A stretch of DNA of 63,964 bases, the filler included, from Salisapilia sapeloensis CBS 127946 (taxonomy: Eukaryota > Protista > Oomycota): the NCBI GenBank assembly GCA_023334545.1. It is 8 parts of 8 records of this genome, joined end to end, with 100 filler letters (N's around TTAATTAATTAA, not from the genome) between each part and the next. Parts side by side here need not be neighbours in the genome. Positions count along the whole stretch, not along the records: positions 26,864 to 45,880 come from JAADVB010000315.1; 7 more parts are not named here. The stretch is one strand, 5' to 3'. The notes below the pieces were generated by a model. That model was not told the DNA's origin. It was given only the letters and a program-made list of their open reading frames with translations, and ran no database searches. The translations under genes were made by a program, and so were the position numbers. How positions within the stretch are numbered: position 1 is the stretch's first letter; the number at the start of each line of letters is the position of its first letter. Shown piece after piece: positions 27,368 to 45,880 of this stretch.

Positions 27368-29080
27368 ATGAAGAGTGGATTTCTCCCATCAAAAGCTAAT
27401 ACCGCAACTCGTGGCCCATCAAATCCTCTAGAGAGTATCCCATCGTGTACCAGGAATCCTACATATGCTCTAGTGGATGACAATCTGCAGGATAAGCTTC
27501 CTTCGTGCTGCAGACAACAGTTATGCGAGTCGAGTTCATCAATCCAGAGTACTTGGGTTCTGCCACTACAGAGTCTGCACGCCGACAAAGATTCCAAGCT
27601 CACGAAGATTGAGTTTAGATGCATGAAAAAGCGAGCATCAGAAGTACATTCGAAATGGGTTCCAATGGACTCAATTACGGTGGCATCTACAGTAGAAGAC
27701 GTTCCACGTGCACTCAGTTTACCACCTGCACACTCCCATTCAAATGCACCACATACGTTTGAAGTTCAGAACCCCCATGTGTCTTTACTCTGTGCTGATC
27801 ATGAAATTGGTCGGTTTTTGACAGTCCGAGATGAGTGCGCACCCGGCACTCGTGTCCTCGAAGCTACTGCCTTTGCAGTTACTCTACATGACAAGTGCGT
27901 ACAGACTCTTTGCCATTGGTGCTTTACAGATCTAGAGAGAAAAGCTTTCCAGTGTGGATCATGTCAGTTTGCTCGATACTGTAGTCGTAAGTGCATGGAC
28001 AATGACACTGCCCTCCACGACTTTCAATGTGGCTCACTGCGTCGCATCCAAAAGTTCGACCAGATGCGCTCTCAGCATAGCTCTGGTAAACTGCACAGCT
28101 CCCGCGAAAGCATCGGGAGACAACGACCTACATCAGCAGTGGACAGCGAAACGATTCGATTGACACTGGCTGTTTTAAGCATGGAGAGCTTTATTGACTC
28201 TGCGAATGCACTCCAGGGTCTTCAGCTGCCATCCCAATGCTTGTCATCGAAAGAAGAGTCCGACCTGGCAGCTGCGGCAAAGTTCATCCACGCCTCTTTG
28301 TTGGAGGAAGAGATCATTGTACCTGTGGATCACATTCGTGCAATACTTCGCAAGGTACAAACGAATGCGCACACTTTAAATGCAGATGGACTTCGCGAAA
28401 TCGGCATTGGAATATTTCCAGAGGCAGCGATGACAGTCAATCACTCATGCTGCCCTAATGTCCTCCCCACTTTTGACCCAAATTCCCGAACTCTTAGTTT
28501 CCAGGCGCTAAAGACGCTTGGCAAAGGAGAAGTGGTCGAGATGTCGTACATTGAAGTGTTTAGCGACGTTTCCAAGCGCAAGGAGCTGCTGCTAAATGCG
28601 TTCGGATTCAAGTGTTGTTGCAGCCGCTGCTGTCGAGACTTGAGGAAAGAGCAGCTGCCGGCGGAGGAAACGGAGAGAGTGCTGAGCAGTCTTCAGCACC
28701 TTTTGACGCCATCCTCCAAGCTATTACCGACCGTCCTTCGTGAAATGAGTCAGCACAAGGAGCAGGAAGCTTCTGTGTATACAAAATCGTCAGAGCTTCG
28801 TTTTTTGTTCTACCTGGGCAAGATGCAGCTACTAATCAATGGAAAGATGCGTACGAGTAGACAGGAAGAAGAGCTCATTTCTACGATCCAGACACTCCTT
28901 CGTCTGTGGAAAGAGGAAGCTCTACCTCCGATCCACTCGACGCCTCTGCTCTTGCTAAAGCACTTAGAGAAGATTCTTCGAGACCAACGACGCTTGTCTG
29001 AAGCGGACGAAGCGTACGACCGGGCCGACATGATTTATCGCACCTGCGGCTTCCCTCTCGGCCTCCCCGTGCGTACATAA
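27368..29080 (+). CDS. SET and MYND domain protein (SMYD family)
   Basis: Split SET domain with MYND CHWCF..CGSCQFARYCSRKC..HDFQC, GIGIFPEAAMTVNHSCCPN, SYIE and post-SET FKCCCSRC. Confidence 0.9.
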   Translation: MKSGFLPSKANTATRGPSNPLESIPSCTRNPTYALVDDNLQDKLPSCCRQQLCESSSSIQSTWVLPLQSLHADKDSKLTKIEFRCMKKRASEVHSKWVPMDSITVASTVEDVPRALSLPPAHSHSNAPHTFEVQNPHVSLLCADHEIGRFLTVRDECAPGTRVLEATAFAVTLHDKCVQTLCHWCFTDLERKAFQCGSCQFARYCSRKCMDNDTALHDFQCGSLRRIQKFDQMRSQHSSGKLHSSRESIGRQRPTSAVDSETIRLTLAVLSMESFIDSANALQGLQLPSQCLSSKEESDLAAAAKFIHASLLEEEIIVPVDHIRAILRKVQTNAHTLNADGLREIGIGIFPEAAMTVNHSCCPNVLPTFDPNSRTLSFQALKTLGKGEVVEMSYIEVFSDVSKRKELLLNAFGFKCCCSRCCRDLRKEQLPAEETERVLSSLQHLLTPSSKLLPTVLREMSQHKEQEASVYTKSSELRFLFYLGKMQLLINGKMRTSRQEEELISTIQTLLRLWKEEALPPIHSTPLLLLKHLEKILRDQRRLSEADEAYDRADMIYRTCGFPLGLPVRT

Positions 29081-29185
29081 CCAAAGATGAATTTATACGA
29101 AAACTAGTCGTTTCCATTCTTAAAGCCTACGAAATAACGCTACGTAAAAAGCACAGTGAGCGATCCACTCATTCATACAATACGC

Positions 29186-31933
29186 TCACTCGTCATCGTC
29201 CTCTGCATTGTGGAAACCCTTGCCAGTGGCCTTGGGTTGCTTCATGCTCTCGAGAATGGGGGATGGGAACTCTACAGGACTCAGTTCCTTATCCACTGCC
29301 GTGCTGTCCGCCTGGTGCGGCCGACCTGCCTCTGCTGAAAGAGCCGCTGCCGCCGCCTCGTCCGAAGGAAGGGTCGAGTCAGAGCTCATGGATGACGCGC
29401 CGGACGGATCGTTCACATTCTCGTGACGACCGAGGTTGGCAATGTCAAATTGAGACTCGATGGGTCCTTCCAGCGTCCGCGAGGTCTCATCCTCCTCATC
29501 GTCGTCGACAACTTCCGAGATATCCTGCCGACCTTCCTTGACGGCTTCGGCGGTTGCAGCCTTCTTGTCCTCTTCGTTCTCCTCATCTTCGTCCATGTAG
29601 TTGAAGGCAAAGTCTTTAAAGTGCTCGTCATGCGTCGACTTGACGGACGCAGGGGTATCCACCGGCACCTCTAGCGTGTTCATGTACGTGTCAAAGATAT
29701 CGTTTGTCTCGTACTCCTTGGCATGTGTCTTCATCAGATTCTCCTGGCCTTCGAAAGTCTCCAGTCGCTGCTCGACGCGCTTCCAGTCTAAACCTCCAAA
29801 CCACGGGTGGTTCATCAAGTGCTCAAAGCCACGTGGTCCTGTTCCGAGTCGGGCTTCTTCGTCCTTGGACAAGAGCTTCGCCACAAAGTCCTTGGCGTCT
29901 TCCGTGAACCGAGGGCTGAAGCGAAGGTCGACATTCGTGATCCGCTCTCGAATCAGTTTGTTCGTCTTGGCGTTGAACGGCGTCCGACCGTCGATCATCT
30001 CGTACACCATGACGCCGAGCGCCCACCAGTCAACTGCTCTCGAGTACGACTTTTTCATAAAAACTTCCGGCGCCATCATTTGGTACGTGCCGACAAAGGT
30101 AGATGTGCGGCTGTCGTCGTCCATGTTCTCCTTGGACATGCCAAAGTCTGTGAGTGCAATGTGTCCGTCGGATCCGACGAGCACATTCTCTAGCTTCAGA
30201 TCACGGTAGATGATGTCGTGTTCGTGCAAATGACGAATAGCCAACGCCACTTCTGCAGCGTACAGCCTCGTCCGGTCTTCCGAGAAGCGCCTGGCCAATC
30301 GCATCTGGTCCAACAGGTTACCGCCAGGGTAGTACTTGGACAAGAGATAGAGCTTCGCATCTGTCTGGAAAGCGTACCGTAAGGTCGCGACGTACGTGTG
30401 GTTGATGCTGTCCAGAATACGCCGCTCCGCGTTGGTAGCCTCTACCAGTCCGCGCTGGATGACCAGCTTCTTCCGAATCGCTTTCATGGCGTACATTGCG
30501 CCCTCGTCCGATCCGTGCTTCTTCCGAACGAGCTTCACGCGACCACATGCGCCTCGACCGATCAGTTTGACGATCTCAAAGTCTTTTAGAGACACAGGCT
30601 CTTCATCGTTCGGCTTGATAAAGACGCTCATGCGTTCTCCGTCCTCTGCATCCACCTCCTTCTGCTTGCGAGTGCGAGGGTCGATGAGGCACGGCAGACT
30701 CTGACACAGTTTGCAGACGCGCCACATGTTGAACGCCGGGACGAACTTGTCTTCGCAACATCGGGAACAGAGTTTGACTTGACACCACGCACACTGTATC
30801 CGACGGTTAAGGACGGTCAGCTTGCGATGACAGATGCCGCAGGAAGAGATCTTTTGCTCGTTGACCGTCACATCTGCTGCTTCCCCACAGCGAGCCGCGA
30901 AGCTTCCGTAGACAGAGCTGCGGACCATCTCTAGAGCCCACGCGCCACTGCTGCCCTGCACAGTGGACGGGACAGCTCCGGCAGAGATGCAGACGCACCC
31001 GTGCTTCTGTTCGCCCTTTGGGATCTTGGACCCGACGTCAATGTCAGACGATAGGATCCACGCGACGGCGCGACGGGCGAGCACTCTGCGGGCAAAGTAC
31101 GTGTCGCTCTCGGCAACGTAATGGCTGGGCTCGACCAGTGCGAGAGCCTTAACTCGGTCCTGGACGACACCTTGGCCGTTGTCATGGTTGAGCAAGTGCT
31201 GGACGAACTGGCAGCCTCGTGAGAAGGCGAGGAGGAAGATGGAGGAAGAGAGAGGGGCGATGATGGAATCCCACGCTTGCTCGACGTGTTCTCGCGGATG
31301 GCAAGGCTGTGCCGCTGGGTTGAGGATGATGACGCCGTAGTTTTCCTTGAGCGCCTTCTCGAGGTACGAGATCATGGACCCGCTCGTGTCACTTCCGCTC
31401 GTCTGGTGCATGCAGATGCTGCGGCTCCAAATGCCGGCTTCGCGATACGGGACGATGACCAGAAGTCTTTCTTTCGTGTCGTATTTTGGAGAGACGTAGA
31501 CCGTGCCGCGCGCACAGTCGGAGCAGAAGGATCCGTCGCTGTTGTCGCTGCCGGACGGTTTGGCCTTAAGTCCGTAGAGGTAGGAGCGTTTGGAGTTGTT
31601 GAGCGTCTCCCAGGCATCGTCGCCGACGACCTGCCGTACGTTTTCGTCCGAGTAGCTGCTGCTGATGGAGTTATTTGCGGAACTTCGGTCGAAGCCGGTG
31701 GAAGCGTCTAGGTCGTCTTCAGCCGTGGCGTCGTTTCCAGAGGAGACGAGGATTTCCCGGAAGCCGAGCTCCTTTTTGATCTGCGTCTGAATGTTCTGAA
31801 TCATCCGATCGACGGCGGCGGATGCGTCGTCGGTGGCGCTGTTGGCCTGTGCGAAGAATGACTTTGACCTGGATGCCTTGGAGGACATGCCTGGCAAGAG
31901 TGAACTGCTGGAACTCGTGTGGGTCATGGGCAT
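29186..31933 (-). CDS. Arb2/FAM172A-like alpha/beta domain + FYVE-like zinc finger + AGC (S6K/SGK/PKB-like) kinase
   Basis: Single uninterrupted ORF (frame open from 32005; likely Met at 31933 or 31888). Kinase: IGRGACGRV, AMKAIRK, YRDLKLEN, DFGMSK, TFVGT, APE, VDWWALG, hydrophobic motif FKDF. Eight-Cys finger: CGIC..CAWC..CSRC..VCKLC. N-terminal domain: VYVSP..RLLVIVP..AGIWSR..GSMISYLEKALKENYGVIILNP..HVEQAWD..AFSRG. Confidence 0.88.
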   Translation of the reverse strand: MPMTHTSSSSSLLPGMSSKASRSKSFFAQANSATDDASAAVDRMIQNIQTQIKKELGFREILVSSGNDATAEDDLDASTGFDRSSANNSISSSYSDENVRQVVGDDAWETLNNSKRSYLYGLKAKPSGSDNSDGSFCSDCARGTVYVSPKYDTKERLLVIVPYREAGIWSRSICMHQTSGSDTSGSMISYLEKALKENYGVIILNPAAQPCHPREHVEQAWDSIIAPLSSSIFLLAFSRGCQFVQHLLNHDNGQGVVQDRVKALALVEPSHYVAESDTYFARRVLARRAVAWILSSDIDVGSKIPKGEQKHGCVCISAGAVPSTVQGSSGAWALEMVRSSVYGSFAARCGEAADVTVNEQKISSCGICHRKLTVLNRRIQCAWCQVKLCSRCCEDKFVPAFNMWRVCKLCQSLPCLIDPRTRKQKEVDAEDGERMSVFIKPNDEEPVSLKDFEIVKLIGRGACGRVKLVRKKHGSDEGAMYAMKAIRKKLVIQRGLVEATNAERRILDSINHTYVATLRYAFQTDAKLYLLSKYYPGGNLLDQMRLARRFSEDRTRLYAAEVALAIRHLHEHDIIYRDLKLENVLVGSDGHIALTDFGMSKENMDDDSRTSTFVGTYQMMAPEVFMKKSYSRAVDWWALGVMVYEMIDGRTPFNAKTNKLIRERITNVDLRFSPRFTEDAKDFVAKLLSKDEEARLGTGPRGFEHLMNHPWFGGLDWKRVEQRLETFEGQENLMKTHAKEYETNDIFDTYMNTLEVPVDTPASVKSTHDEHFKDFAFNYMDEDEENEEDKKAATAEAVKEGRQDISEVVDDDEEDETSRTLEGPIESQFDIANLGRHENVNDPSGASSMSSDSTLPSDEAAAAALSAEAGRPHQADSTAVDKELSPVEFPSPILESMKQPKATGKGFHNAEDDDE

Positions 31934-32560
31934 GGTATTTATAAAATAATTTGCTAGCGGAGAAGGTCTTGCCGGCGAGGGGGAAAGAGGAAAAATGAAT
32001 TGCATACTAGGACGCAGTCAGGCGACGCAGCTGGTGGACTTTCTACCGAATGCCATCTCCCGACTTGCTTTTTTCCATCGAGTGCAACTGTATACCGTCG
32101 GTCGTGTCAAATCGGATGCACGGGACGCCTAGATAAGATCGTGGGCGCGACGGAGTGGAAGAGCTGGTCTTAAATTAGACATGCACGTTTACAGCGTGAA
32201 CCCTCTTTGCATCTGTCGAATCAGGATGGGTGCGGGTGTCGAGGAACCCAAGTCGGCGCTCGTAACGTCCGGTCAAACGCGACGGACTGTCTGTCTGCAC
32301 GCCCGTCTTGCCGGTCGTGGCCTCGCGAATCTTTTCATACTTTGCGATCGGTAGGAATTCTTTTCTTCCGCACCAAGTCAGCCAAAACGTCCGGACGTCA
32401 TTGGGCGAAAATACGTTCAGTCGAGCCGAAAAATCCAAAACACGATTTCCAAAGAGAAGAGCTCTTGTACAGACTAGGTACGGCCTTCGTTCCCGACGGC
32501 CTCCGACGTGCATTTAACAAAAAACTCTCTTGTGCATAGATACACCCAACGTTTTACACC

Positions 32561-35500
32561 ATGGCAACCGACCAAGCTTTCCAAGGGGCCGGCAGCACGC
32601 ACGGACTGCAGGCCTGGCGCATTGAAGATCTGCAGCCCGTGGCCGTGAGCAGGAAGGACATGAACAAGCTGCACATGGGCGACAGCTACATCTTCCTCAA
32701 CACCTCCAGGGGACAAGGGTAGGTCATCTCCTGGACCGATCCCCCATTCAATCTGCCGTTCGTCTAATCGTCAATGCGTGTCATAGAGGCAAGCGCTGGG
32801 ATATCCACTTTTGGCTTGGAAAAGAGACCTCGCAAGACGAGAGCGGAGCGGCAGCTTACAAGTCCGTCGAGCTGGACGATGCTCTTGGTGGAGGCGCCAC
32901 CCAGCACCGGGAGTGCCAGAACCACGAATCGGTACGTTTGTCATCGACTGCCTGGCCAAAGTGTCGTATGCATAACCTCTCTGCTTCTAGGACCTCTTCC
33001 TGTCGTACTTTAAAGAGTCGGGACTCCAGTACCTCGAAGGCGGTGTCGCCAGTGGCTTCAACCAAGTGGATCGCGACAGCTACGAAACGCGTCTCTTCCG
33101 CGTCAAGGGCAAACGCACGGTCCGAGTGACCCAAGTGCCGCTATCGGCCTCCTCGCTCACAGTCGACGACGTGTACATTCTGGATAAGGGACTGGAACTC
33201 TTCTTCTTCGAAGGTCCAGACGCGAACCGCGTCGAAAAAGCTAAAGGCTTAGACTTTATCCGCAAATGCAAGGATGAAGACCGGGGCGGACGTGCCGACA
33301 TTGTCTTTATGGTCGATGAGCCGGAGAACGCTTCGTTCTGGGAGACGCTCGGAGGCCAACAAGAAGTGACGAAGCGAGGACTGCCGGACGATGAGCACGA
33401 CCGGATGCAGAAGAAGACGACCAAGGTACTCCGCGTCCACGGCACGGACGACGTCGAGACGACGGACGTAACGCCGTCTTCCGGTGTTCTCACAAAGGAC
33501 CTGCTGGACTCGAAGGACGTCTTTATCTTGGACGTTGGCAGCTCCGTCTTTGTCTGGATCGGCAAGGAAGCCGAAACCGAAGAGCGAAAGTACTCAATGA
33601 CGGTCGCCACCAACTACTTGGCGCAGAACGGCAAGTCGACCCACACGCCCGTCAGCCGCATTGTGGAAGAAGGCGAGCCGGCCGAGTTTCAAGTGCTCTT
33701 CAAGCAGTGGAATGCGCCCAAGCCGCTGGACTTTACCGTCCAGAGCCAAGGCATCGCCCAGACACAGGACGACTACGAGGTGGACGTGAACAAGCTCGCG
33801 TCTTCTCCCGTCGCCAAGGAGGAGGACTTGGGACTGGACGGCGAGCACGACATCCAGGTGTGGCGCATCGAGGATATGGACAAGGTGCCTGTGCCGGAGG
33901 AACTGGTCGGTCAGTTCTTTGGAGGCGACAGCTACATCGTCCTGGACAAGAAGACGACTTCCGCTGGTCGGACGCAGCACATTATCTACTTTTGGCAAGG
34001 ACGCGACAGCACGGTGGACGAGAAGGGGTCGTCTGCGGCCTTCACGACGCAGCTGGACGATGAAATGGGCGGAGACGCCGTCCAGGTGCGCGTCGTTCAA
34101 GGCAAGGAGCCCGCGCACTTCCGCGCCTTGTTCGACGGCAAGATGATCGTTCATGCCGGTGGCAAGGCGAGTGGCTTTGTCAACCGCGACGACCAGGACT
34201 CGTACGATGAAGACGGCGTCAAGCTGTACCACGTCAAGGGCACCAAGCCAGAGAACACGGTCGCGTCGCAGGTGGAAGACTCTGCGTCTGCCTTGAACTC
34301 TGGCGACTGCTTCGTCCTCGTCACGTCCGAGACGGTCTTCGCGTGGAAGGGCAACGGCAGCAACGCTTCCGAGCAGGAGGTGGCTCTGAACGTCGCCAAG
34401 ATCCTCCAGCGGAACCGCGACTTGGAGGAAGTGGAGGAAGGCGACGAGCCGGTCGAGTTCTGGGTCATGCTCGGCGGCAAGAAGGAGTACGCCAAGCAAA
34501 AGGCAGCGGTGGAGCTTCCGCATGCCGCCCGCCTCTTCCATTGCTCTAACATGTACGGGTACTTTGATGCGCACGAGGTCATGAACTTTGATCAGAGTGA
34601 TTTGTCGGTGGACGATGTCTTTTTGCTCGACACGTACACGACGCTCTTTGTCTGGATCGGATCCAAGGCGAACGAGGAGGAGAAGAAGAACGTCATGAAG
34701 CTGGCGGACGAGTACCTCGACACCGTCCGAAGCGACGGACGTGACCAGGGAACGCCGGTCGTGACCGTTCGCTGCCGACGCGAACCTCCCATGTTCACGA
34801 GCAACTTTTTGGCCTGGGACGACTCGTACTTTGACAAGGATGAGTTTGTTGACCCGTACGAGACCAAGCTACGGAAGATGCGGGAGGAAAAGGAGAAGAA
34901 CGCCCCGGAGGACTTGGAGGGAACCATCACGAGCGAAGATGTCAAGGAGGCGAGTGCTGTCTCTGAGCCAGCCTCCTCTCTCGACGTCTCCGCCGGATCC
35001 TTCGAGTCCAACAATGCAGAGCTGGTGCGTATGGAGGAGGACTCTCTTCCGGGCTCGGCTCCGATGCCAGTGCCCGGACAAGGAATGCAGGTGGACGAAC
35101 CAGGCGCACCTGCCCCCACCTCCGTCTCGTCTGCTCCCACGGACAAGGATGTGAGCGTAAATGAACTCATTCGTGAAGAGGAAGACGCACTATCGAATGG
35201 GGCTCCGGTTTCTGCTGCTTCGGCTGCTGAGGAAGCCCCGGTGTCCACCTCCTCGGCCGTTGAAGATGCTCCAGTATCTGCTGCTTCAGCCGCTCAGGAA
35301 GCCCCGGTGTCTGCTGCGTCGGCTGCATCGGAACCTCCTTCGAACGAAGAGACGTCCGAAAGTCCTGAACCGCTCCAGGACGTTTCGGAGTCTACGGCGG
35401 AGGAACCTTTCAAGCCATCCGCTGCGCCCAAGGAAGAAGAGCCATCGTCCGAAAAGGAAGAGATCTCAACGCCCAAGGAAGAGGCGCCTGTGGAGAAGGA

Positions 35501-35705
35501 AGAGAGCGCGCCAGCCAAGAGCAGCGGTGGGTCGTACTCGTACGAGCAGCTCGTGGAAGGCGTGGATGGGATTGACATTACGGCCAAGGAGACTTACTTG
35601 TCGGACGCTGATTTTGCCGAGGTGTTTGGCATGGACCGCGCCGAGTTCGAGAAGATGCCCAAGTGGCGCCAACAGCGCAAGAAGCAGGACGTGAATTTGT
35701 TCTAA
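32561..35705 (+). CDS. VIL: Villin (gelsolin repeats + acidic linker + headpiece)
   Basis: Exons 32561-32718, 32787-32931 and 32991-35705 splice in frame: [48 protein letters not shown]. Repeated gelsolin motifs; headpiece [28 protein letters not shown]. Confidence 0.95.
35202..35335 (+). repeat. Four 33-nt coding tandem repeats ([11 protein letters not shown]-like) in the villin linker
   Basis: Protein reads [44 protein letters not shown], with matching GC(C/T)CC..T.TCTGCTGC.TC.GC units in the DNA. Confidence 0.85.
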
Positions 35706-35805: not shown

Positions 35806-36648
35806 CTAGCGACGTCTGTCCTGCAGACGAGGGCGGTGTTGGTCCTGCTCCAGCTGAGCCGACTGGTTCGACTGGATTAACTTGCCGTTCACATACTCCT
35901 CTGTCACACGCTTCGTCTTACCATCTGAACCGGTCGTCTCCGTCGTCTTCTTCATGACCTTCCGACCGCTGCTGTCGACGTACGTGGATGAACTGACCTT
36001 GGTCGAGACGCCACCGCCGATCTGGCCGGAGAAGCCGCTGCTAGAGCTGTGCATGCGCATCATACTAGAGTTCATGCCCATGTTGCTGAAGAAGGCGTCG
36101 TCGTCGTCAAACATGCTGTCCATGTTCATCATGCCAAAGGACCCAAAGCCAAAGGGGTCTGTTCGACGACTAGGACGACCGCCTCTCGACCGACCGTGGT
36201 TGAAGAACGACTCAAATGGATCTTCTCCGCCAAAGAACGACTCGAAAATGTCTCGCGCGTGACGCATGCCTCCGAACGGATCCTGACGACCACGCCGAGA
36301 CGTGAAAAACTCGTCATACTCTTCGTCCTCTCCACTGCTGTCGCGACCAATACCACGTTTCCCCAGTCGCTCGTACGACTTCCTCTTGGCGCTGTCTCCC
36401 AGGACTTCGTACGCTTCTGATATATTCTTAAAGTACTCCTCCGCCTTAGGATGGCTGCGATTCTTGTCCGGATGCCACTGGACTAGCATGTTAAACAGGT
36501 TTTAGTTCGGGAGCTGCCGTCTACATCTTAGGAAGAACCAACCTGCTAGTTTACGATAAGCCTTCTTGACATCTCCTTCCGTCGCAGAGCGAGTGAGGCC
36601 CAGCACTTCAAAGTAGTCGTCGGATTCCAAGTGAGCTACGGCACTCAT
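35806..36648 (-). CDS. DnaJ/HSP40 co-chaperone (DNAJB6-like, class B)
   Basis: Exon 1 (36648-36543) MSAVAHLESDDYFEVLGL..KKAYRKLA, intron 36542-36483, exon 2 VQWHPDKN..FKNISEAYEVL, then a G/F-rich region and S/T-rich C-terminus. Confidence 0.93.
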
Positions 36649-36943
36649 GTTCTCCGTCTTCTTCCGTGTCTTCGACTCTGGATTTTCACTCGGTTTCGTC
36701 GCGCTTTCTTCTCTCGATCGCTTGGATGCTGGATTGCAAGTGCCTTCTTCGACGTGGTCGTACCGGGCACAACGTCCCATTCGTCCAGTGTTATTTTTGG
36801 TCTGGTGGAGCGCTTGCTCTCGCCATATATTCCACCATACAGATCATACTGAATTCCAAGTCGAATTTTTACCAGACATCCGTTTACATACAAAATGCAA
36901 GTGATTCGGACCAAACCACGGTCAGCCCTCTTGTTCGAGAAGC

Positions 36944-38459
36944 ATGAACCTGTCTGGGAAGATGTGCATGTTATTATGGACCATCTTGGCCTCTTTGTCT
37001 AGCCGCGTCCTCGGTTTCGACACCCCCGTTTTAGAATACAACGGTCCTTCCCATTATGACTTTGGATACCAACTCGGGGAAAGGTTTAAGAGTCAAATCC
37101 ACGCTCGTGTCCAAAAGCATGAAAAGCTGCAGACACTTCTTCTGCCGTACTACGAAACGAAAGAGGGAAAGGAGCTGTACCGAAAGTACCTAGAGACGCA
37201 CAATGCTACGTTTCCGGTAACTAGCTATATCTTCAATCGGGTCGTAGAATCTAAATTTTATTTGACATTCTCTAGGAGTACCTCCAGGAGATTGAGGGTA
37301 TTGCCGCCGGCAGTGAGAGGCCTTTCGAGGTAGACAGCAAACAGCTTGCTATTTAGACCAACCTTTTCGCTAACAGTACGATACGCTCTAGGTCATCTTT
37401 TTACTGAACATTGTGGAAGAATACCAAGACTCGATCCCGACGTCGTTCACTCCTGACTTTCATCGTACGCACGAGTTAAGGTAGTACTCTTTAAAATATT
37501 TTTGATTAACTCTTGACCAACTACTATCCAAATAAAGGTGCTCCGATATTGTCGTCATGGGTGACTCACATCGCTTCGTTGCCCACAACGAAGACAGCGG
37601 CATTCAAGATGTAAACCACTCGGCAATCGTCGTCGCCCAGATAGGCCAGGAGCCAAAGTTTATCGGATTCACATATCTCGGAGACCTTCCGTCCGGAGCG
37701 TTTGCAGCCAACGCCAATGGCATCGCTTTCACGCTCAACTGTACGTATCTACGTGATACGCTCCATATCCGTTCTCATCTAATGCATTCGCCTCTCTAGT
37801 CGTAGAGCCATCCGATATTGAAATTGGTGGACTCGGTCGAGGCTTCATCTCCCGAGACCTCTTGACAGCAGTCAACATGACCGAAGCCATCGCTATGGCC
37901 ACCCGGTACGCTCGACGTGCTCGTACCATCTTTATTTTTTCTCACCTATAGCTCTTTTCGTTGCAATAGCCCTCATCAAGCGGCAGGACACAACTACCAA
38001 CTCATGGATCTCCACGCAAATCGAGTGTACAATGTTGAAGCTGCTTCCTTCCACCGATTTGTCGTGTACGAGTACCCGTCTGCCTCTCGGACGTCTCAAC
38101 TGGGCTCGAAGAGTATCCAAGGCGTGACGTACTTCCACGCAAACCAGTACCAGCGGCTAGTCATCCACCAGCCGCCGTACCAAAGTAGTCTCCATCGACT
38201 GCACAGGTATGCAGAGCTTTCTCCTCCAAGAACGACTGAGGAGGCGCTGTGGGTGCTGGGAGACCAGCAAGACCAGCTCTACCCCATTTACCACGACGCC
38301 AAGTCCCATGCCAGTGGAGAATTGTCCGGCTGGACTCTTGCTACTGTCGTCTTTGACCTACGACACAATGTGGCCCTCGGGTACGAAGGAAACCCTCGTC
38401 TTGAGCAGGTCTCATGGAAGTGGGATTTGAACACAATGCAAGTATACATGGCTGCTTGA
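36944..38459 (+). CDS. Secreted peptidase C45 / acyl-CoA:6-APA acyltransferase-like Ntn hydrolase (multi-exon)
   Basis: Hydrophobic N-terminal signal (MLLWTILASLSSRVLG), HYDFGYQLGERF, nucleophile segment CSDIVV..FVAHNED, NANGIAFTLN, YFHANQY, TLATVVFDL. Several short introns. Confidence 0.82.
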
Positions 38460-39272
38460 TCCAGGACGTCAGTGGTATCTTTGAAGTACTCTACTGGACA
38501 TAGTACAACGTTTTACCACCATCATCTTCGTAGCTCCTTATGATTTCCACTTCGCTTGAACACTCTTCTAGCGGCGTTTGCTGTGGACAGATTAGAAAAA
38601 CGCAGACGATACTAGATAAGAGGAAGCGAGTAAGGCATGCTATGAATACAAACCCACCTGAGAATGTATTCTTTGCTACAAAGTGTGCAAAAATTGTACA
38701 CCCAGGCTCTGCGCAATTGCCACCAGCTACCTGAGACCAGTCGCACTTGAGCTAACTGGGAGGCATCTAGTCTTGGTGTATAGATGCTTGCTGACTAGCA
38801 CTCGACCGTAAACTGCATCGAAATAAAAGCTACATGAATTTTGTTCTTGGATGACAAAGCTACTTGTTAAGCATGGCATGGCATCAGAGAATCGTGAATG
38901 TTTTAAAAGATCCAGCGCCCTTGAAGCCACACCTTCAAGAAGCAAAAGTGAGTGTCTATGATATGCAAGCATGCGCGTCCGTTCAAGAGACAGGGCATAT
39001 CTACCAGCTCCAAACGCATCTTGCAATCTTCATTTCAACCGTTTCTGTACCTCATCTGCTTCTGTATCAAGTCCTACTCTTTACACTCTTCTTGCCGATC
39101 TATGAACTAAATGGACATGGACACTTGGATAGAGATTTGTGCTCATGCAAGAGTTTATTGTTGACGACCTAAATACAAATAATATCTGTTGGAGTTACTT
39201 TTAAGTCTGTAAGGAAAGTTATATTTATAGCTGGCACTACTTCGTGCACAAGTAAAGATACTTGCACGCACG

Positions 39273-40399
39273 ATGAAGACAGCAGATGAAGTAGCAAATG
39301 AGCGTACACAAGTCGCAAACAAAGCTCCCGCTCCAGCCAAGATACTTTCCGACGAAGCAGAAGACGAGGATGAAGAAGCAGCATTGGTTCGTTAGCACCG
39401 TCTGATGTCTCGTATATCGCTTCGACACATCTAACGTTAGGATACGTAGGAAATGTTGGATTGGCTGAATGCGTCAGCCTCCGACCCGAAGCAGCCATCA
39501 TCAACCTTGTCAGCATGCATCTCGAATTTAATGTGCTGTACTGGAAGTGTTCGTTTCTTATTGCTCGTACTGATCTTTCTACCGGCTGCTGCCATTATCA
39601 TACTAACCTCCATCGATGACATGGACACGTACATTATTGTTCTCGGAGCTACTTCTTTTTACGCTCTGTATATTGTACTAAAGGTGTTTACGTGGTTTCT
39701 GGTGTACGTCCAGCAAGTCCAAACAGATACAAGGACAGCCAAGATTGCTCATCACTACATCCAACAGACTTTGGTGATGAAAAACGCTACGAGAACGAAT
39801 ATTCCTGGTACTGCCATGAAAGTGCTTCCGACAGCTGGAAAGATTCCAGGACTCTTTGCCCTGCTAATGAAAGCTGCCAAAGAAGATGACGTCGACACTC
39901 TCAAATGGGGATTTAGCCAAAATGTCCTCACCGACTACAGCAAGCGAGATTACAACGGCCGATCGCTATTACACTGGGCTGCAATGCGAGGCAGCTCTAA
40001 CGCAATCGAGTTCTTGCTATCCAACGGAGCGGCAATCAACTTGCAGGTATGAGTGGGATCAATTGCACAAGACGCATAGTGTAACATTTTAGTTATGAAT
40101 AGGATCGACTGCATTGCTTAACACCGTTGCACTACGCTGCGTACTACGGACACCTGCAGTGCGTCCGAATATTGGTCGACAAAGGAGCCGACCTCTTCCT
40201 CACAGATGACCGAGGGTATGTTCCTCTACAAATGGCCGAAACTGCTATGCTGGCCTTGTCAACGACGCAACCTGCCCACCAAATGATCGTTCGATATGTC
40301 CGAGGCTGGATGGGGGAGAAAGCGCCACCTCCAATTCAAAGTCTCACGTCCGGTGTCACTGTCGTCAACCTTGTCAGTCGTCAAGCGCAAATGAAGTAG
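39273..40399 (+). CDS. Two-TM + ankyrin-repeat protein (multi-exon)
   Basis: Exon 39273-39386 (MKTADEV..) splices in frame to 39450. Two hydrophobic helices, then ankyrin repeats GRSLLHWAAMRGSSNAIEFLL and PLHYAAYYGHLQCVRILVDKGAD..PL. Confidence 0.8.
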
Positions 40400-40603
40400 C
40401 TTGGTAATAAACACATCCCACCAAGTACACAATCATACAAATTGCCCACTCGATCTCATAATCGCACGTTTGCACCCGCAAGATAAGAGTGCTTGGTGGT
40501 CTGGAATTTCGAATCCTTTCAGGATCGATTAATTTGTATGTCAAATGACAGAAGCCTTTTATATCTCTGTTGCGAACGCACGAACTGAAGTGACGAAATT
40601 AAG

Positions 40604-42116
40604 ATGGGGTCTCGCAGGAGGAGGTCGACTTCAGCATCATTGGCGTACTTCCTCCTCACCACATTCCTTGGACTCGTGCTACTTGCAATACTGTACACCA
40701 ATGTAATGATTGGTACACCGACGTTCGAGCCACGACCGAAAACATAAAGGAACGACTTTTATGCACGAGTTAAACTTAGGCGAGATGCATTCGGGCACGA
40801 CAGCACTAAGCGCTATGCAAAGCATATCGGCATTACTAATCCGATCGACCTGCTTGAAGTGAACAAAACACTTTCCAACGCGGAGCGAAGGGCCTACGAG
40901 TTTGCCAGCGTAGCATATTCGACAGTGAAACCAGGCGCATGCGGCATCGTCCTACCTATATACGATTAGATTGTGATGGAAGGCGCGTCGCTCTTGCGTG
41001 ATCTGGATGCTTATTATGTGCTGAATTTGCCTATTGAGATCCTACATTGTGGCGATCTAAAGCCAGAGTACCAAGAGCTACTTCGACACCAATTACCAGG
41101 AACGACCGTCCACGTTTATGATATCTGTGCAAAAGCATTGGAAACTTCGCATGTATTTTGCCACGACATGCAGCACTGCCAAAAGCGCTTTCGAGGCTTC
41201 CTGATCAAGCCCCTCTCGGTCGTGTTCTCTAAATTCGAAGAGATCATGTTTTTCGATGCAGACATTCAGTTCTTTCGAGACCCCATGACATTATGAAGTA
41301 CTCAGGAGTACAAATACAACAGGCATCTATCTCTTTCGAGATCGAAAATGCCAGGCGAAGCGCTTTGCCGGACATCCGACTAGAATGTGGGATCACGATC
41401 GGACTCGTTTAAACATGTTTCTTGAACAATTTTACATCGACCCGTTCCGAATTTTGCTCACATTGCCTCGAGAAAAGCATCGAGCAATACCGTACGACCC
41501 GATGGTCATCGAAATGAATCTGATAGAGAAGCTGCCATATGAGCCAAGTAACGAACTTCTCAAGAGCCACGTGTGGAACCTCCGATCGGGCCACATCATT
41601 GATTCGTCTCTAGTGCTGTGGAACAAACGAAAACAGGTTCGAGCAACGGCACTGTTGTCATTATTCATTGGTCGAGGGCAGTTGAAGCCTCAGTCATACG
41701 GAGACAAAGATCTCTTCTTCGTTGCAAGTGAGTTGGCCAAGATGCGTTGCAGTCTGTTTCCGTACGGCGTTGGTGCGTACGGCAACGACGTTCGTTGGCA
41801 CCAAAAGAACCGGACTCGTTGTAATCCTATGATTGCGTTGTGCGGCCAAGCGCTGCACTTCTATCCGACAGTAGAAGTGGATGTTGCATCGGATGCGCCA
41901 GCCTTCTACGTCAATAGCAACGGACTAATGAAGACGGAGGCGAATGGAAAGCAGTTGTACCGTACGAAGGCGAGGGACAAGAGTGTTTAACCTAGCGACA
42001 ATAGTTAGTGGAAACTACGCAAGGAGTGCGAAGTGGACGTGGAAGTCATGGAGCTATCGCCCGCCGAATTGAAGCGACTCAAATGGAGACAGGAATATTT
42101 TGACGAGTTGCTGTGA
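40604..42116 (+). pseudogene. GT71 alpha-mannosyltransferase-like pseudogene
   Basis: Type II TM anchor from ATG 40604, then GIVLP, LPIEILHCGDL, LIKPLSVVFSKFEEIMFFDAD, DSSLVLWNK, SYGDKDLFF, LCGQALHF. Interrupted by in-frame stops (about 40745, 40967, 41294, 41380, 41988) and a frameshift. Confidence 0.82.
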
Positions 42117-45100
42117 TAGGATCGTAATGTAAACTAATAGAACACACACTACTGGTTGTATTCCAGCGTCTTATAGCGAATCGTGGAATGCGTTTCTCCT
42201 TACATGTAAATCTAGGAGCGTATTGAAAATAAAAGTTTGCTACTTGGATTTTAATGAATACACGTGGAGACCATCTAGGCCGTCTTCGTTCTAGTTTAAA
42301 CTAAATCGACCACGGTGGGAGCTGAAGCTGAAACTGACAAGTGTTGGAAGTCGAATGGAACCCTACAAAGTTGAAGTTCATCGGATGTCGCACAAATGTT
42401 GACACAAGAAAATAAAATAAATAGGAAAGAGAGTAAGAAAGATAATAAAATCAAGTGGTCGGTCAACTGGATCGATCACTCTCCTTTTCGCACAGAACCA
42501 AGCACTTCAGCCAAGCTATCTCGTGTGCATAGGTTTCGTTGGAATTCTAACAAGCTTGAATAATAAGATGTCGAGAAAATTGATCGCTTCTGTGTCAGCA
42601 TCCGCTCCATTTTCCAACACGTGAATGAAGCTGAATCTTTACGGTTAAACTGACAAACATGCATTGGTCTATCATACCACTGTGTTGTGTTCGGATTAGT
42701 AGACTGAAACCCTGCCTTCGATGAAGCTAATATCAATTTTTAGGTGCCGTCTCGCTGAAAAAGGTGCACATACGTGCAAAGATGGCGAGTCGTAAAGCAG
42801 AGCAATCGAGAGACGACGACACTAGAATAATGACAACCATTTAAGTGGAGCACATGGATGATTATCATGTGGAGAAGAAAGCATTCTATGTTGCAGCTGC
42901 GGTAAGCATAGATGATAAGGGTCGGATGAGTGTAAAGAATCAATGCGTAGTTTTGGATAGGCGGTATGAAGCTAAAAAGGTCAAAACGAATACTTCCGGC
43001 TTTAAAACGCATGATAGAGATCTAGCAAGCTTACATTTCACTATCTTGAGCGAACTAATGTGCTACTACGAGTTTGATAGGATACTATGAACGATAGGTC
43101 ATATAGGTCCTATGGTAGAGGAGTCATGCTGCTCGGCACGTTCCGTACGTCCACTATCTATGTATGATGATGAGTGTCAACGAGAGGCTTCATCTGCCAC
43201 AACGAGTCACATCATGAGTAATACAGTTGTGGTGATGCGGGTAAATAAATATACCTAGACCACAAAGGCCAATGTGGAAAGATAGCATTCACTAGGCTGT
43301 GTATATTAGCAGCGGCTTTTGATTTGACCAACACAATTCTGCAGCCAAACACAAACCGCAAGTTCGCTGGGTATGAGCTATTTGCAGCAGAAGGGAGCCA
43401 AGATGGTGATTGGCGGATCTGGACGTAACTTTCTATAAAAGTAAGAGAAAGAACGCGCATCAAGCTCCCAGTCTTTAAAGCCGTTAACAAGCGGCTGATA
43501 GCGGATAGCTTGTAGCCTCGCGTACGAGCTCCTCTGACACTAGACCTGATCGCGGAACACGTCCAGACCTTAAACCTTAGCACCCGCTGGTGGTTTGATC
43601 GACAAATTTCCAACCCGCTAAAACGAGCGAGGTACTACATCTAACCAGTAGAAACCAGAGACTGAGTGTCTTACACAGAATTTGGTAGTACTGTCCGTCT
43701 GAATTCAATATAACCGGCGCTGGGCAGTACCGAACAGCTTGACACCTTTTGGCTGTTGCTTTACCTTTTTTTCCTTCTCCCCTCTCGATATGAAGTGCTT
43801 TTCTGCGTTTTATTAAACCCGGAAAAGCATAAATATGAAGTGCTGGTGTTGGTTTCCGCGAGAAAAATCAACTCTATAGTGCGAACCTGACGTTGAGCTG
43901 GAGTTACTATTCGAACACTAACGTTGCAGAGGACGCTTGTGAACTTAGTCGGAAAATCTAGGTTGAATTACTAGCTTACCTACCTTTGTTTTCTTCTTCG
44001 TTGTTTTCCTACTTCCAATCTTTTTGCTTACATTCCTATCTTCCCCTCCTCTACGCTCCACTTGTTTTCAGTATCTGGCTGTCACTGGCTGCCACCAACT
44101 TCTGATGACATCCGTCACTTGGCCCCGGCCTAGTAGGTTAGGCTGACCCCAATCATCGCCTTCGACACCTTGCGCACGGTTGAAAATCTTCCCTCTCATC
44201 TCTGCTCTAGGTCAAGTGGTGTAAACACCATCACACACTTTCTTTGCATACTTTAAGCACATTCCCTTATCGGCATCCATAGGCTGAATATGTCTTCACT
44301 GAGCACTCATCAACGACACTCTACACCGTCTGGCTTTGTCGACCATTCTTAGTTGTCCATCGTTGCTGATGATTTGGACCCTCACAGTCTGTCCTCGTAA
44401 CTCCTTCACGCTCCTTCGAACTATTAGATACCACCGAAAACTGTCGCTTCCGTTGGCTTATCACCTTCGTATACTAAATGCTTTATCTGCCTTGAACTGA
44501 TATCTCAAACCCGCCATTTCACCGACCGTTTTTTTGGAGGTTCTTTGACGTTGGTTTCTTGGTTCATGCACCCTCATTCTCATTTAAAGCATCCGTAGGC
44601 CTGCACATTAAGCGATTACCTCCTTTAATATTTCTTCATCACAGCTCACTGAGTCACGGTTAGCTCGGTTGGTTACACCTGACCGACAACCCTCATTTGC
44701 TTTAAAATTTTTTGTCTCGTTCCATACCGTTGCCCTCCACCGCTACAGTCGCATTATTGGTTGGTAGTTGTACAACCAGTACTGAGTAACACTGCTTTAC
44801 AGTAGCTCGTGCTGAATCCCTGCTAATGTGACTGGCCGCGACCACTCAGAGCTGGGTATCCGGATATAAAGTGCGCTTTCCATCTGAGTACACCTAGCAA
44901 ATCTTTTCTCATATCAATACAAGTCTTCATCTTCTCGCAACCTGCAAGCCTTTCAGTTTTCAGCGGTTCATGCCTAATCTCAATTGGATTCTCCTAGAGT
45001 AACCTGGTTATTGATGCGGTCGTGACGCCCTTTATTTTGCATCGGCTTCAATTGTACGTATACATATGGTGGATGTTTCGCGTAGTAGCAATAACTGCTA

Positions 45101-45406
45101 GGCTCGTTTTTTATCTATCCGCACTGGCATGACTTGTTCGCGTGACGATCGGGTCGTACTTCGACATTGGCTTCGTCAGGAGTGTGATAATATACTTCCA
45201 AATTTTTCAGCTAGATCCAAGGGCGTACGTTGACACCGCTTATGGGAGTAATTACATTGTCTTACATCCAGCTTATTACTTGGGGCTGATATCGGATGCC
45301 TATAAGAAACAGGCTGGCCTACTCCTAAAACCAAAAATTGTGTAGGATGTAGCACAGTAAGCATAACTTTTGCAATGGACACGAACCACTCTTTCGATAG
45401 AGTTCG

Positions 45407-45730
45407 TGTAATGGGACTAGTTTCTTCTGTCTCTCGGAGAGAGAATCAGAGGAAGCAAGAGAAGTAGAGCGGATCCTAGAAAGGTATCCGAGACCAACGA
45501 AGACTTGAAGGATTGAGTCTTAGAAGGAAAAATTGCAACTGAATTAAAAGTAAGCTCTTAAAGAGAGCGTCCTAAATCTAGTGCTATCCTGTCCTCTCTT
45601 CACCAAGACTGTCTAGTTCAACATGCATAGTAAAATGAAGATCTCGGTCCTTGCGTCATAGAAAGCAGGTGCTGACGTCACTGGAATTCGGTTCTGCGTC
45701 GTTCCCGCGCTGCGTGTCTTTGCTGCCCAC
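45407..45730 (+). mobile_element. LTR remnant, family A
   Basis: Starts TGTAATGGGACTAGTT and shares CGGATCCTA(G)AAAGGTATCCGA, AAAATTGCAACTGAATT and CTATCCTGTCC with the reverse-strand copy at 47850-48034. Confidence 0.6.
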
Positions 45731-45880
45731 TGTGACGGGAGTCACAACGATAGCCCTTTAAACGTAAGGGAAGCGTAAAACGCGGAGTATGAAACTCTTG
45801 TACTTAAAAAGTACGGAAGTAGTGTAAGACACTTGTGCTTTAGAAAGCAAAATAAGAACTGGTTGTATTTAGCGTTAATC
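45731..45880 (+). mobile_element. LTR, family B (truncated by spacer), apparently inserted into family A
   Basis: Starts TGTGACGGGAGTCACA and is highly similar over about 140 bp to 48424-48566. Confidence 0.7.

Follow-up and report, generated by a model that had tools for sequence, protein, structure and literature searches.

An Arb2-FYVE-AGC kinase gene of Salisapilia sapeloensis, ortholog of Phytophthora sojae PsZFPK1

The window analysed here, a 63,964-nucleotide stretch of joined genome records of the oomycete Salisapilia sapeloensis CBS 127946, carries on its minus strand a 939-residue open reading frame (ORF; 29186..32005 including the stop codon) that encodes an Arb2 (FAM172A/ARB2A-type) domain, a FYVE-like zinc finger and an AGC protein kinase in a stop-free single frame. 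Sequence comparison identifies it as the Phytophthora sojae PsZFPK1 ortholog, and it very probably belongs to a stramenopile family of S6K/Akt-like AGC kinases in which the Arb2 domain and the finger would be regulatory interaction modules. A sequence-only reading of the window had put the gene forward as a candidate for an undescribed system, stating that no description of the architecture was known. That proposal is withdrawn because the architecture was published in 2010 (PMC3019232, Table S1) and the function of the ortholog in 2023 (PMC10381902); hence the gene is not to be ranked as an undescribed system.

PsZFPK1 and the published architecture

The combination of Arb2 with FYVE and AGC kinase domains was recorded in the P. 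infestans kinome of Judelson & Ah-Fong (2010), who regarded Arb2 as a novel kinase accessory domain unseen outside Phytophthora and who found diatoms, apicomplexans and ciliates to be without an ortholog (PMC3019232). Table S1 of that survey lists PITG_01365 ('FYVE, ARB2') and PITG_06776 ('ARB2, C2, FYVE'), both as AGC/AKT kinases; the text discusses PITG_06776, and PITG_01365 is drawn with FYVE. We rejected both as the direct ortholog of the window gene, since their Table S1 kinase sequences differ from that of the window and they are therefore paralogs. They resemble the window protein in their published architecture and in an ELGFRE helix before Arb2, but identity is only ~36%, and such paralogs keep RRHHCR or WRRHCR in the finger and often lack the elbow serine of the Arb2 domain. 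The P. infestans ortholog is a 918-residue protein annotated as 'ribosomal protein S6 kinase, putative' (P0126).

PsZFPK1 is P. sojae protein 345221 of Ru et al. 2023 (PMC10381902). The corresponding database entry, PHYSODRAFT_345221 (P0011), is 69% identical to the window protein, whereas the paralog P0186 is only 36% identical, and in the tree of Arb2 domains the window protein and P0011 fall in one clade with support of 98. The numbering of the published study equals that of P0011 minus 88, such that PsZFPK1 T602 and A766 are P0011 T690 and A854 and window T636 and A800; the spacing from the T-loop threonine to the hydrophobic-motif alanine is thus identical in the two proteins. They also agree in the order of the Arb2, FYVE-like and AGC domains, and their finger cores are degenerate in the same manner (RRIQCA in the window protein, RRIPCS in PsZFPK1). 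They differ in coming from different oomycete genera and in their low-complexity N- and C-terminal parts, which diverge.

The genetics of PsZFPK1 have been published (PMC10381902). CRISPR knockout strains grew more slowly, and worse on nitrogen-poor medium, produced more sporangia and no oospores, and showed lowered virulence and reduced sensitivity to rapamycin. Removal of the N-terminal region (residues 2-321), of the FYVE domain or of the kinase domain each abolished function. T602 was found to matter, and residue 766 is naturally alanine. A PsZFPK1 fusion to green fluorescent protein (GFP) was seen in nuclei and cytoplasm, as was free GFP, and deletion of any of the regions left this localisation unchanged. 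Given the numbering offset, the deleted residues 2-321 correspond to window residues ~43-362 and so cover the entire Arb2 domain, although the term 'Arb2' is absent from PMC10381902. In public databases the orthologs are already annotated with the Arb2 family PF22749, and a P. ramorum gene model bears the title 'Cotranscriptional regulator FAM172A'. A literature search found no further work that links Arb2 to kinases in stramenopiles and none that follows up PsZFPK1.

The kinase ORF is one intronless, expressed gene with all three domains in one transcript. Two RNA samples from the same organism as the window each gave one ~3.2-kb contig spanning the ORF (X1 record 3, 29101-32307; X3 record 6, 29092-32352) with 0 mismatches and no joints, and the unspliced minus-strand transcript (29092..32352) comprises the whole ORF, ~95 nt of 3' untranslated region and a 5' leader of ~300-350 nt. 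Upstream of the transcript RNA depth was 0 at 32375-32525. We take these contigs to be genuine RNA because the contig of the neighbouring villin-like gene shows two GT..AG introns spliced out. Because ortholog models begin where M25/M27 lies in the window protein, this is the likely true start, and the 24-26 codons before it probably belong to the leader. Two 2025 RNA data sets (X5 and X6) from a second organism, which by its sequence is a close relative or strain, hold a ~96% identical copy over window positions 29138-31427. The differences lie almost all at third codon positions of the kinase frame, which indicates that the frame as a whole is under strong purifying selection. Some 45 oomycete proteins with 57-72% identity to the window protein have the same Pfam content and architecture; their sources are Phytophthora, Pythium, Bremia, Peronospora, Albugo, Aphanomyces, Achlya and Thraustotheca.

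The single stop-free frame and every motif string quoted in the sequence-only reading were found on the minus strand, and the RNA contigs of both samples cross the domain junctions unbroken rather than splitting the ORF into two genes. That an adjacent Arb2 gene and kinase gene were joined by chance read-through or by assembly error is therefore scarcely conceivable, and we rejected it on the RNA contigs, the frame-wide third-position pattern and the shared Pfam content of the orthologs. Some database ortholog models are indeed Arb2-only or kinase-only (e.g., P0040 and P0044-P0047), as two separate genes might appear, but these short models adjoin full-length ones in the tree and look incomplete. 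Moreover, ~35 orthologs are full length, there are collinear paralogs with all three domains, and the PsZFPK1 gene model was confirmed with reverse transcription PCR (PMC10381902).

Domains of the protein and the fusion family

The Arb2 domain occupies residues 164-374 (30884..31516, minus strand), a delimitation based on Pfam, a structural model, fold matches and conservation; the segment 30896-31650 (residues ~119-370) that the sequence-only reading had called Arb2/FAM172A-like is the Arb2 core. With the full protein as query the Pfam Arb2 family PF22749 scored 58.8 bits (E 6.8e-16) versus a cutoff of 26.8, the match being in two stretches (residues 168-232 to profile positions 77-140 and residues 237-320 to positions 175-257), and the isolated N-terminal third scored 66.3 bits. 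The domain has the motifs G191-x-W193, H240, an A260-F-S262-R-G264 elbow, E292-P-S-H295 and C337-x-C-x-S341-A-G. When the Arb2 region was compared directly with PDB sequences, neither sequence nor profile searches gave a meaningful match, and the relation to solved Arb2 domains is visible by fold only.

For structure prediction, an oomycete Arb2 profile was run against 1.84 billion representatives, which gave 665 relatives, and 109 diverse Arb2 domains were aligned. An initial AlphaFold model of residues 125-450 built from 33 close orthologs had a predicted local distance difference test score (pLDDT) of 51 and was discarded, a shortcoming remedied by the diverse 109-sequence alignment, with which the model of residues 160-374 reached a pLDDT of 93.2 and a predicted template modelling score of 0.91. 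The best matches of this model among the Swiss-Prot AlphaFold models were ARB2A/FAM172A proteins from Dictyostelium, mouse, human and others (template modelling score, TM, 0.80-0.82; E 1e-13 to 1e-10), and in the same set S. pombe Arb2 gave a TM of 0.70 and Hda1 and Clr3 gave 0.61-0.63. In the PDB fold search Clr3 (5ikk) had an E of 1.5e-7 and the Hda1 Arb2 domain (5j8j) was next-best, with lipases and other alpha/beta-hydrolases (TM <0.5) ranked below the Clr3 and Hda1 Arb2 domains. Hence two independent methods, the family profile and the fold of the predicted model, assign the domain to the FAM172A/ARB2A family. The earlier call thus holds against a generic alpha/beta-hydrolase. FAM172A/ARB2A, S. 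pombe Arb2 and Hda1/Clr3 share with the window protein the fold and the motifs GxW, NP, H, the A-x-S-x-G elbow, [DE]xxH and CxCxSAG, but these proteins are standalone or linked to histone deacetylases, fall in a separate clade and at position 292 carry Asp where the window protein has Glu.

Upstream of the Arb2 core is a short, strongly conserved N-terminal helix motif (residues 62-88, 31742..31822, minus strand), VDRMIQNIQTQIKKELGFREIL, which contains ELGFRE and was delimited from the alignment and the Table S1 sequences. The paralogs PITG_01365 and PITG_06776 have it too, and it is followed by a low-complexity insert that separates it from the Arb2 core. The motif may belong to the Arb2 domain as its N-terminal element; in FAM172A an inserted loop is said to divide that domain.

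The FYVE-like zinc finger (residues 386-436, 30698..30850, minus strand; Pfam and alignment) follows. The sequence-only reading had named it FYVE-like, and the term is apt: PF01363 matched residues 382-435 with 21.6 bits, under the 27.8 cutoff. All eight zinc-ligand cysteines (C389, C392, C405, C408, C413, C416, C431 and C434) are present and conserved in orthologs, and the RVC motif (R429-V-C431) is kept. Of the motifs that bind phosphatidylinositol 3-phosphate (PI3P), the window finger lacks WxxD, and the position of R(R/K)HHCR reads RRIQCA. The fingers of the paralogs are canonical or near-canonical, with RRHHCR (as in P0152 and P0168) or WRRHCR, and therefore the degeneration is specific to the PsZFPK1 lineage. 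This loss of PI3P-binding residues would account for the lack of effect of FYVE deletion on PsZFPK1 localisation.

The AGC kinase catalytic domain (residues 476-736, 29798..30580, minus strand; Pfam, PDB matches and motifs) had been recognised correctly within the same ORF. The Pkinase match had an E of 5e-59, and the top PDB matches were S6K1 (E 2.5e-74), then Akt and RSK, with PKA also among the top matches. The kinase looks catalytically competent, as its motifs are intact (G-loop GRGACGRV, K508, Y-R-D602, D620-F-G and APE) and the T-loop site is of the AGC type (T636 in T636-F-V-G-T). The AGC C-terminal tail (residues 737-803, 29597..29797, minus strand), defined from the alignment, has an invariant T784-P785 and a hydrophobic motif, F796-K-D-F-A800-F, with alanine at the usual phosphorylation site and then an acidic run; the Pfam Pkinase_C tail model found no match in the window protein. 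Owing to the alanine, a TOR-type phosphorylation input at that site is impossible. The protein ends in an acidic, low-complexity extension (residues 804-939, 29189..29596, minus strand) that the ortholog alignment shows to be poorly conserved. Akt (PH-AGC), SGK3 (PX-AGC) and p70 S6K have the closest kinase domains and the same plan of an N-terminal accessory module plus a T-loop-activated AGC kinase, whereas the accessory module of the window protein is Arb2 plus a FYVE-like finger lacking phosphoinositide-binding residues, and its hydrophobic motif has Ala.

Fusion of Arb2 to a kinase extends beyond the PsZFPK1 orthologs. The architecture search for Arb2 plus kinase returned fusions in oomycete paralogs and in Nannochloropsis, with FYVE in oomycete members, and among the 144 best-ranked distant Arb2 representatives ~25 also had an AGC kinase. 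The Arb2-FYVE-AGC arrangement occurs in paralogs such as P0152, which has a canonical FYVE of 47 bits, and P. rubi P0186, which is collinear with the window protein over Arb2, FYVE and kinase (36% identity over 636 residues). PH-PH-Arb2-AGC proteins are found in Pythium oligandrum (P0183) and Aphanomyces (P0236), and Saprolegnia has Arb2-AGC proteins without the FYVE-like finger. In five oomycete paralogs (P0183, P0236, P0193, P0157 and P0149) Arb2 and the AGC kinase are accompanied by two to four PH domains, so that Arb2 recurs beside phosphoinositide-binding modules in the kinase clade. P0149 (2041 residues), in which PH occurs in four stretches and Arb2 in two, may represent a merged gene model.

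An Arb2-AGC kinase of the eustigmatophyte Nannochloropsis oceanica (P0208/P0316; Arb2, 81 bits) is present in two NCBI assemblies as well as in JGI and Logan copies, and is collinear with the window protein (27% identity and E 2e-16 over Arb2; 44% and E 1e-66 over the kinase). A marine protist transcriptome of MMETSP also holds an Arb2-AGC fusion (P0224/P0325). Neither fusion has the FYVE finger, and in both the elbow residue is Gly.

Of the 35 kinase-fused rows in the 109-domain Arb2 tree, 33 fell into one 53-row clade (Shimodaira-Hasegawa-like approximate likelihood-ratio support, 94), and the standalone Arb2 proteins formed a separate 50-row clade (99). The 'unfused' rows within the fused clade are mostly beside fused ones and look like incomplete models. 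The tree came from a quick search with a midpoint root, has a weak backbone and contains one fused outlier, P0195; within these limits it argues against multiple independent Arb2-kinase fusions, and the sequences fit one old Arb2-AGC fusion followed by duplication. The elbow position 262 is Ser in 44/50 standalone proteins and in 34/34 PsZFPK1 orthologs (the latter aligned from Peronosporales to Saprolegniales), whereas the kinase-fused clade has Ser in only 21/53 and Gly in 22/53. The acid at position 292 is Asp in 45/50 standalone proteins and Glu in 43/53 kinase-fused rows and 34/34 orthologs, and position 295 is His in 49/50, 43/53 and 34/34, respectively.

Genes flanking the kinase gene

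A villin/gelsolin-type gene on the plus strand (32537-35705) encodes five gelsolin repeats and a villin headpiece (Pfam E 1.7e-64 and 1.6e-16). Its listed ORF starts at a GTG at 33066. The RNA contigs begin at 32537 and have two GT..AG introns (32718-32785 and 32931-32989) removed, and the true start is therefore in upstream exons. The ~185-bp gap between the 5' ends of the kinase (minus) and villin-like (plus) genes, 32353-32536, has zero RNA depth and is probably a compact bidirectional promoter. On its other side the kinase gene is convergent with a 570-residue MYND zinc finger ORF (27368..29080, plus strand); the stop codons are ~105 bp apart and the RNA contigs end within ~20 bp of one another (29073 and 29092), such that the 3' ends nearly abut. 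Farther along, over window positions 35806-45880, GC content falls from ~0.55-0.60 to 0.42-0.50 past ~36.4 kb. The ORFs of this region, which include a DnaJ fragment (35806..36489, minus strand), one that resembles acyl-CoA:6-APA acyltransferase (37917..38459), one with ankyrin repeats (39453..40052) and one with a weak likeness to mannosyltransferase (41385..41990), probably all represent exons of spliced genes.

Function and its alternatives

By analogy with the genetics of PsZFPK1, the window kinase would promote vegetative growth, especially on poor medium, would restrain sporangium formation and would be needed for oospores and full virulence. Its Arb2-containing N-terminal region, finger, kinase domain and T-loop site should each be indispensable, and none should set localisation. 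We infer that phosphorylation of the T-loop by a PDK1-type kinase would switch the kinase on and that the Arb2 domain and degenerate finger would act as intramolecular or protein-protein modules (dimerisation, partner or substrate docking) rather than as a membrane-targeting device or an Argonaute adaptor. A conserved subregion of Arb2 mediates homodimerisation of FAM172A, Hda1 and Clr3 (PMC10205598). The domain has an alpha/beta-hydrolase-like fold, and in Hda1/Clr3 its role is that of a dimerisation or histone-binding module. As Arb2 dimerises these three proteins, homodimerisation or partner docking is the most economical guess. Several points weigh against this assignment. The whole function is carried over by analogy from a 69%-identical ortholog. 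The invariance of S262, E292 and H295 in all 34 PsZFPK1 orthologs leaves room for catalysis or ligand binding, and a published GFP pattern close to that of free GFP says little on nuclear or chromatin roles.

The name of the domain invites another explanation, the one proposed in the sequence-only reading, that Arb2 binds Argonaute or chromatin and so ties small-RNA or heterochromatin silencing directly to AGC-kinase or lipid signalling. We consider this very unlikely. FAM172A does associate with AGO2, an interaction discussed in terms of a loop with a nuclear localisation signal and CK2 site (PMC10205598), but at the place of that loop the window protein has an unrelated low-complexity insert. 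The domain is in one family with S. pombe Arb2 and FAM172A/ARB2A by its fold (TM 0.70 and 0.8), but the family name reflects the partner of one member, not a demonstrated property of the fold, which in Hda1/Clr3 makes dimerisation or histone contacts, and the kinase-fused domains are a clade of their own apart from the standalone FAM172A-type proteins. Nor are the Argonaute, chromatin or splicing roles of FAM172A, Arb2, Hda1 and Clr3 known to be tied to features held in common with the kinase-fused clade. The nuclear signal of PsZFPK1-GFP would suit such a role, but the pattern equals that of free GFP, and the knockout phenotypes concern growth, nutrient and rapamycin responses and sporulation, without a silencing readout (PMC10381902). 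The link to Argonaute or chromatin thus comes from the family name and is unsupported.

The invariant residues raise the further alternative that the Arb2 domain of the PsZFPK1 group is a working serine hydrolase of the esterase or lipase type, or a small-molecule or lipid sensor, that gates the kinase. This seems unlikely, although less so than an Argonaute role. S262 is in an A-x-S-x-G motif right after a beta-strand and before a helix, the classic position of a nucleophile elbow, and it persists together with E292 and H295 across the orthologs, as do Ser, Asp and His at these sites in most standalone FAM172A-type proteins. A weak Pfam Ser_hydrolase match (E 0.003) lies over the elbow, and lipases and esterases are among the lower-ranked fold matches. 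Canonical alpha/beta-hydrolases have their His after the last strand. In the window protein, however, there is no His at that place, and H295 is only three residues past the acid, in the loop after strand 6. Moreover, most kinase-fused paralogs, including that of Nannochloropsis, carry Gly, Ala or Asp in place of the elbow Ser; with Ser in only 21 of 53 rows of the clade and Gly in 22, hydrolysis cannot be the common function of that clade. In one published scheme Arb2 is classed as an inactive alpha/beta-hydrolase-like domain (PMC11878206). A broader conjecture, likewise a long shot, is that in the PsZFPK1 group the Arb2 pocket (Ser262, Glu292 and His295, inherited from standalone FAM172A-type proteins) may still work, with a small molecule or lipid as its substrate or sensed ligand or an Argonaute or chromatin partner docked to it, and in this way gate a kinase switch among growth, sporangia and oospores. 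If true, the protein would pair a kinase with an enzyme or sensor, a type of module ancient in stramenopiles given the Arb2-AGC fusion of Nannochloropsis.

We therefore retain the assignment to a family of S6K/Akt-like kinases with Arb2 and the finger as regulatory interaction modules. The Arb2-AGC clade comprises several architectures (Arb2-FYVE-AGC, PH-PH-Arb2-AGC and Arb2-AGC) and, as it reaches Nannochloropsis, is wider than the 2010 survey found. The specific loss of PI3P-binding FYVE residues in the PsZFPK1 lineage adds a modest point. For PsZFPK1 itself, the 'N-terminal region' found to be essential is an Arb2/FAM172A-type domain that went unrecognised in the functional paper.

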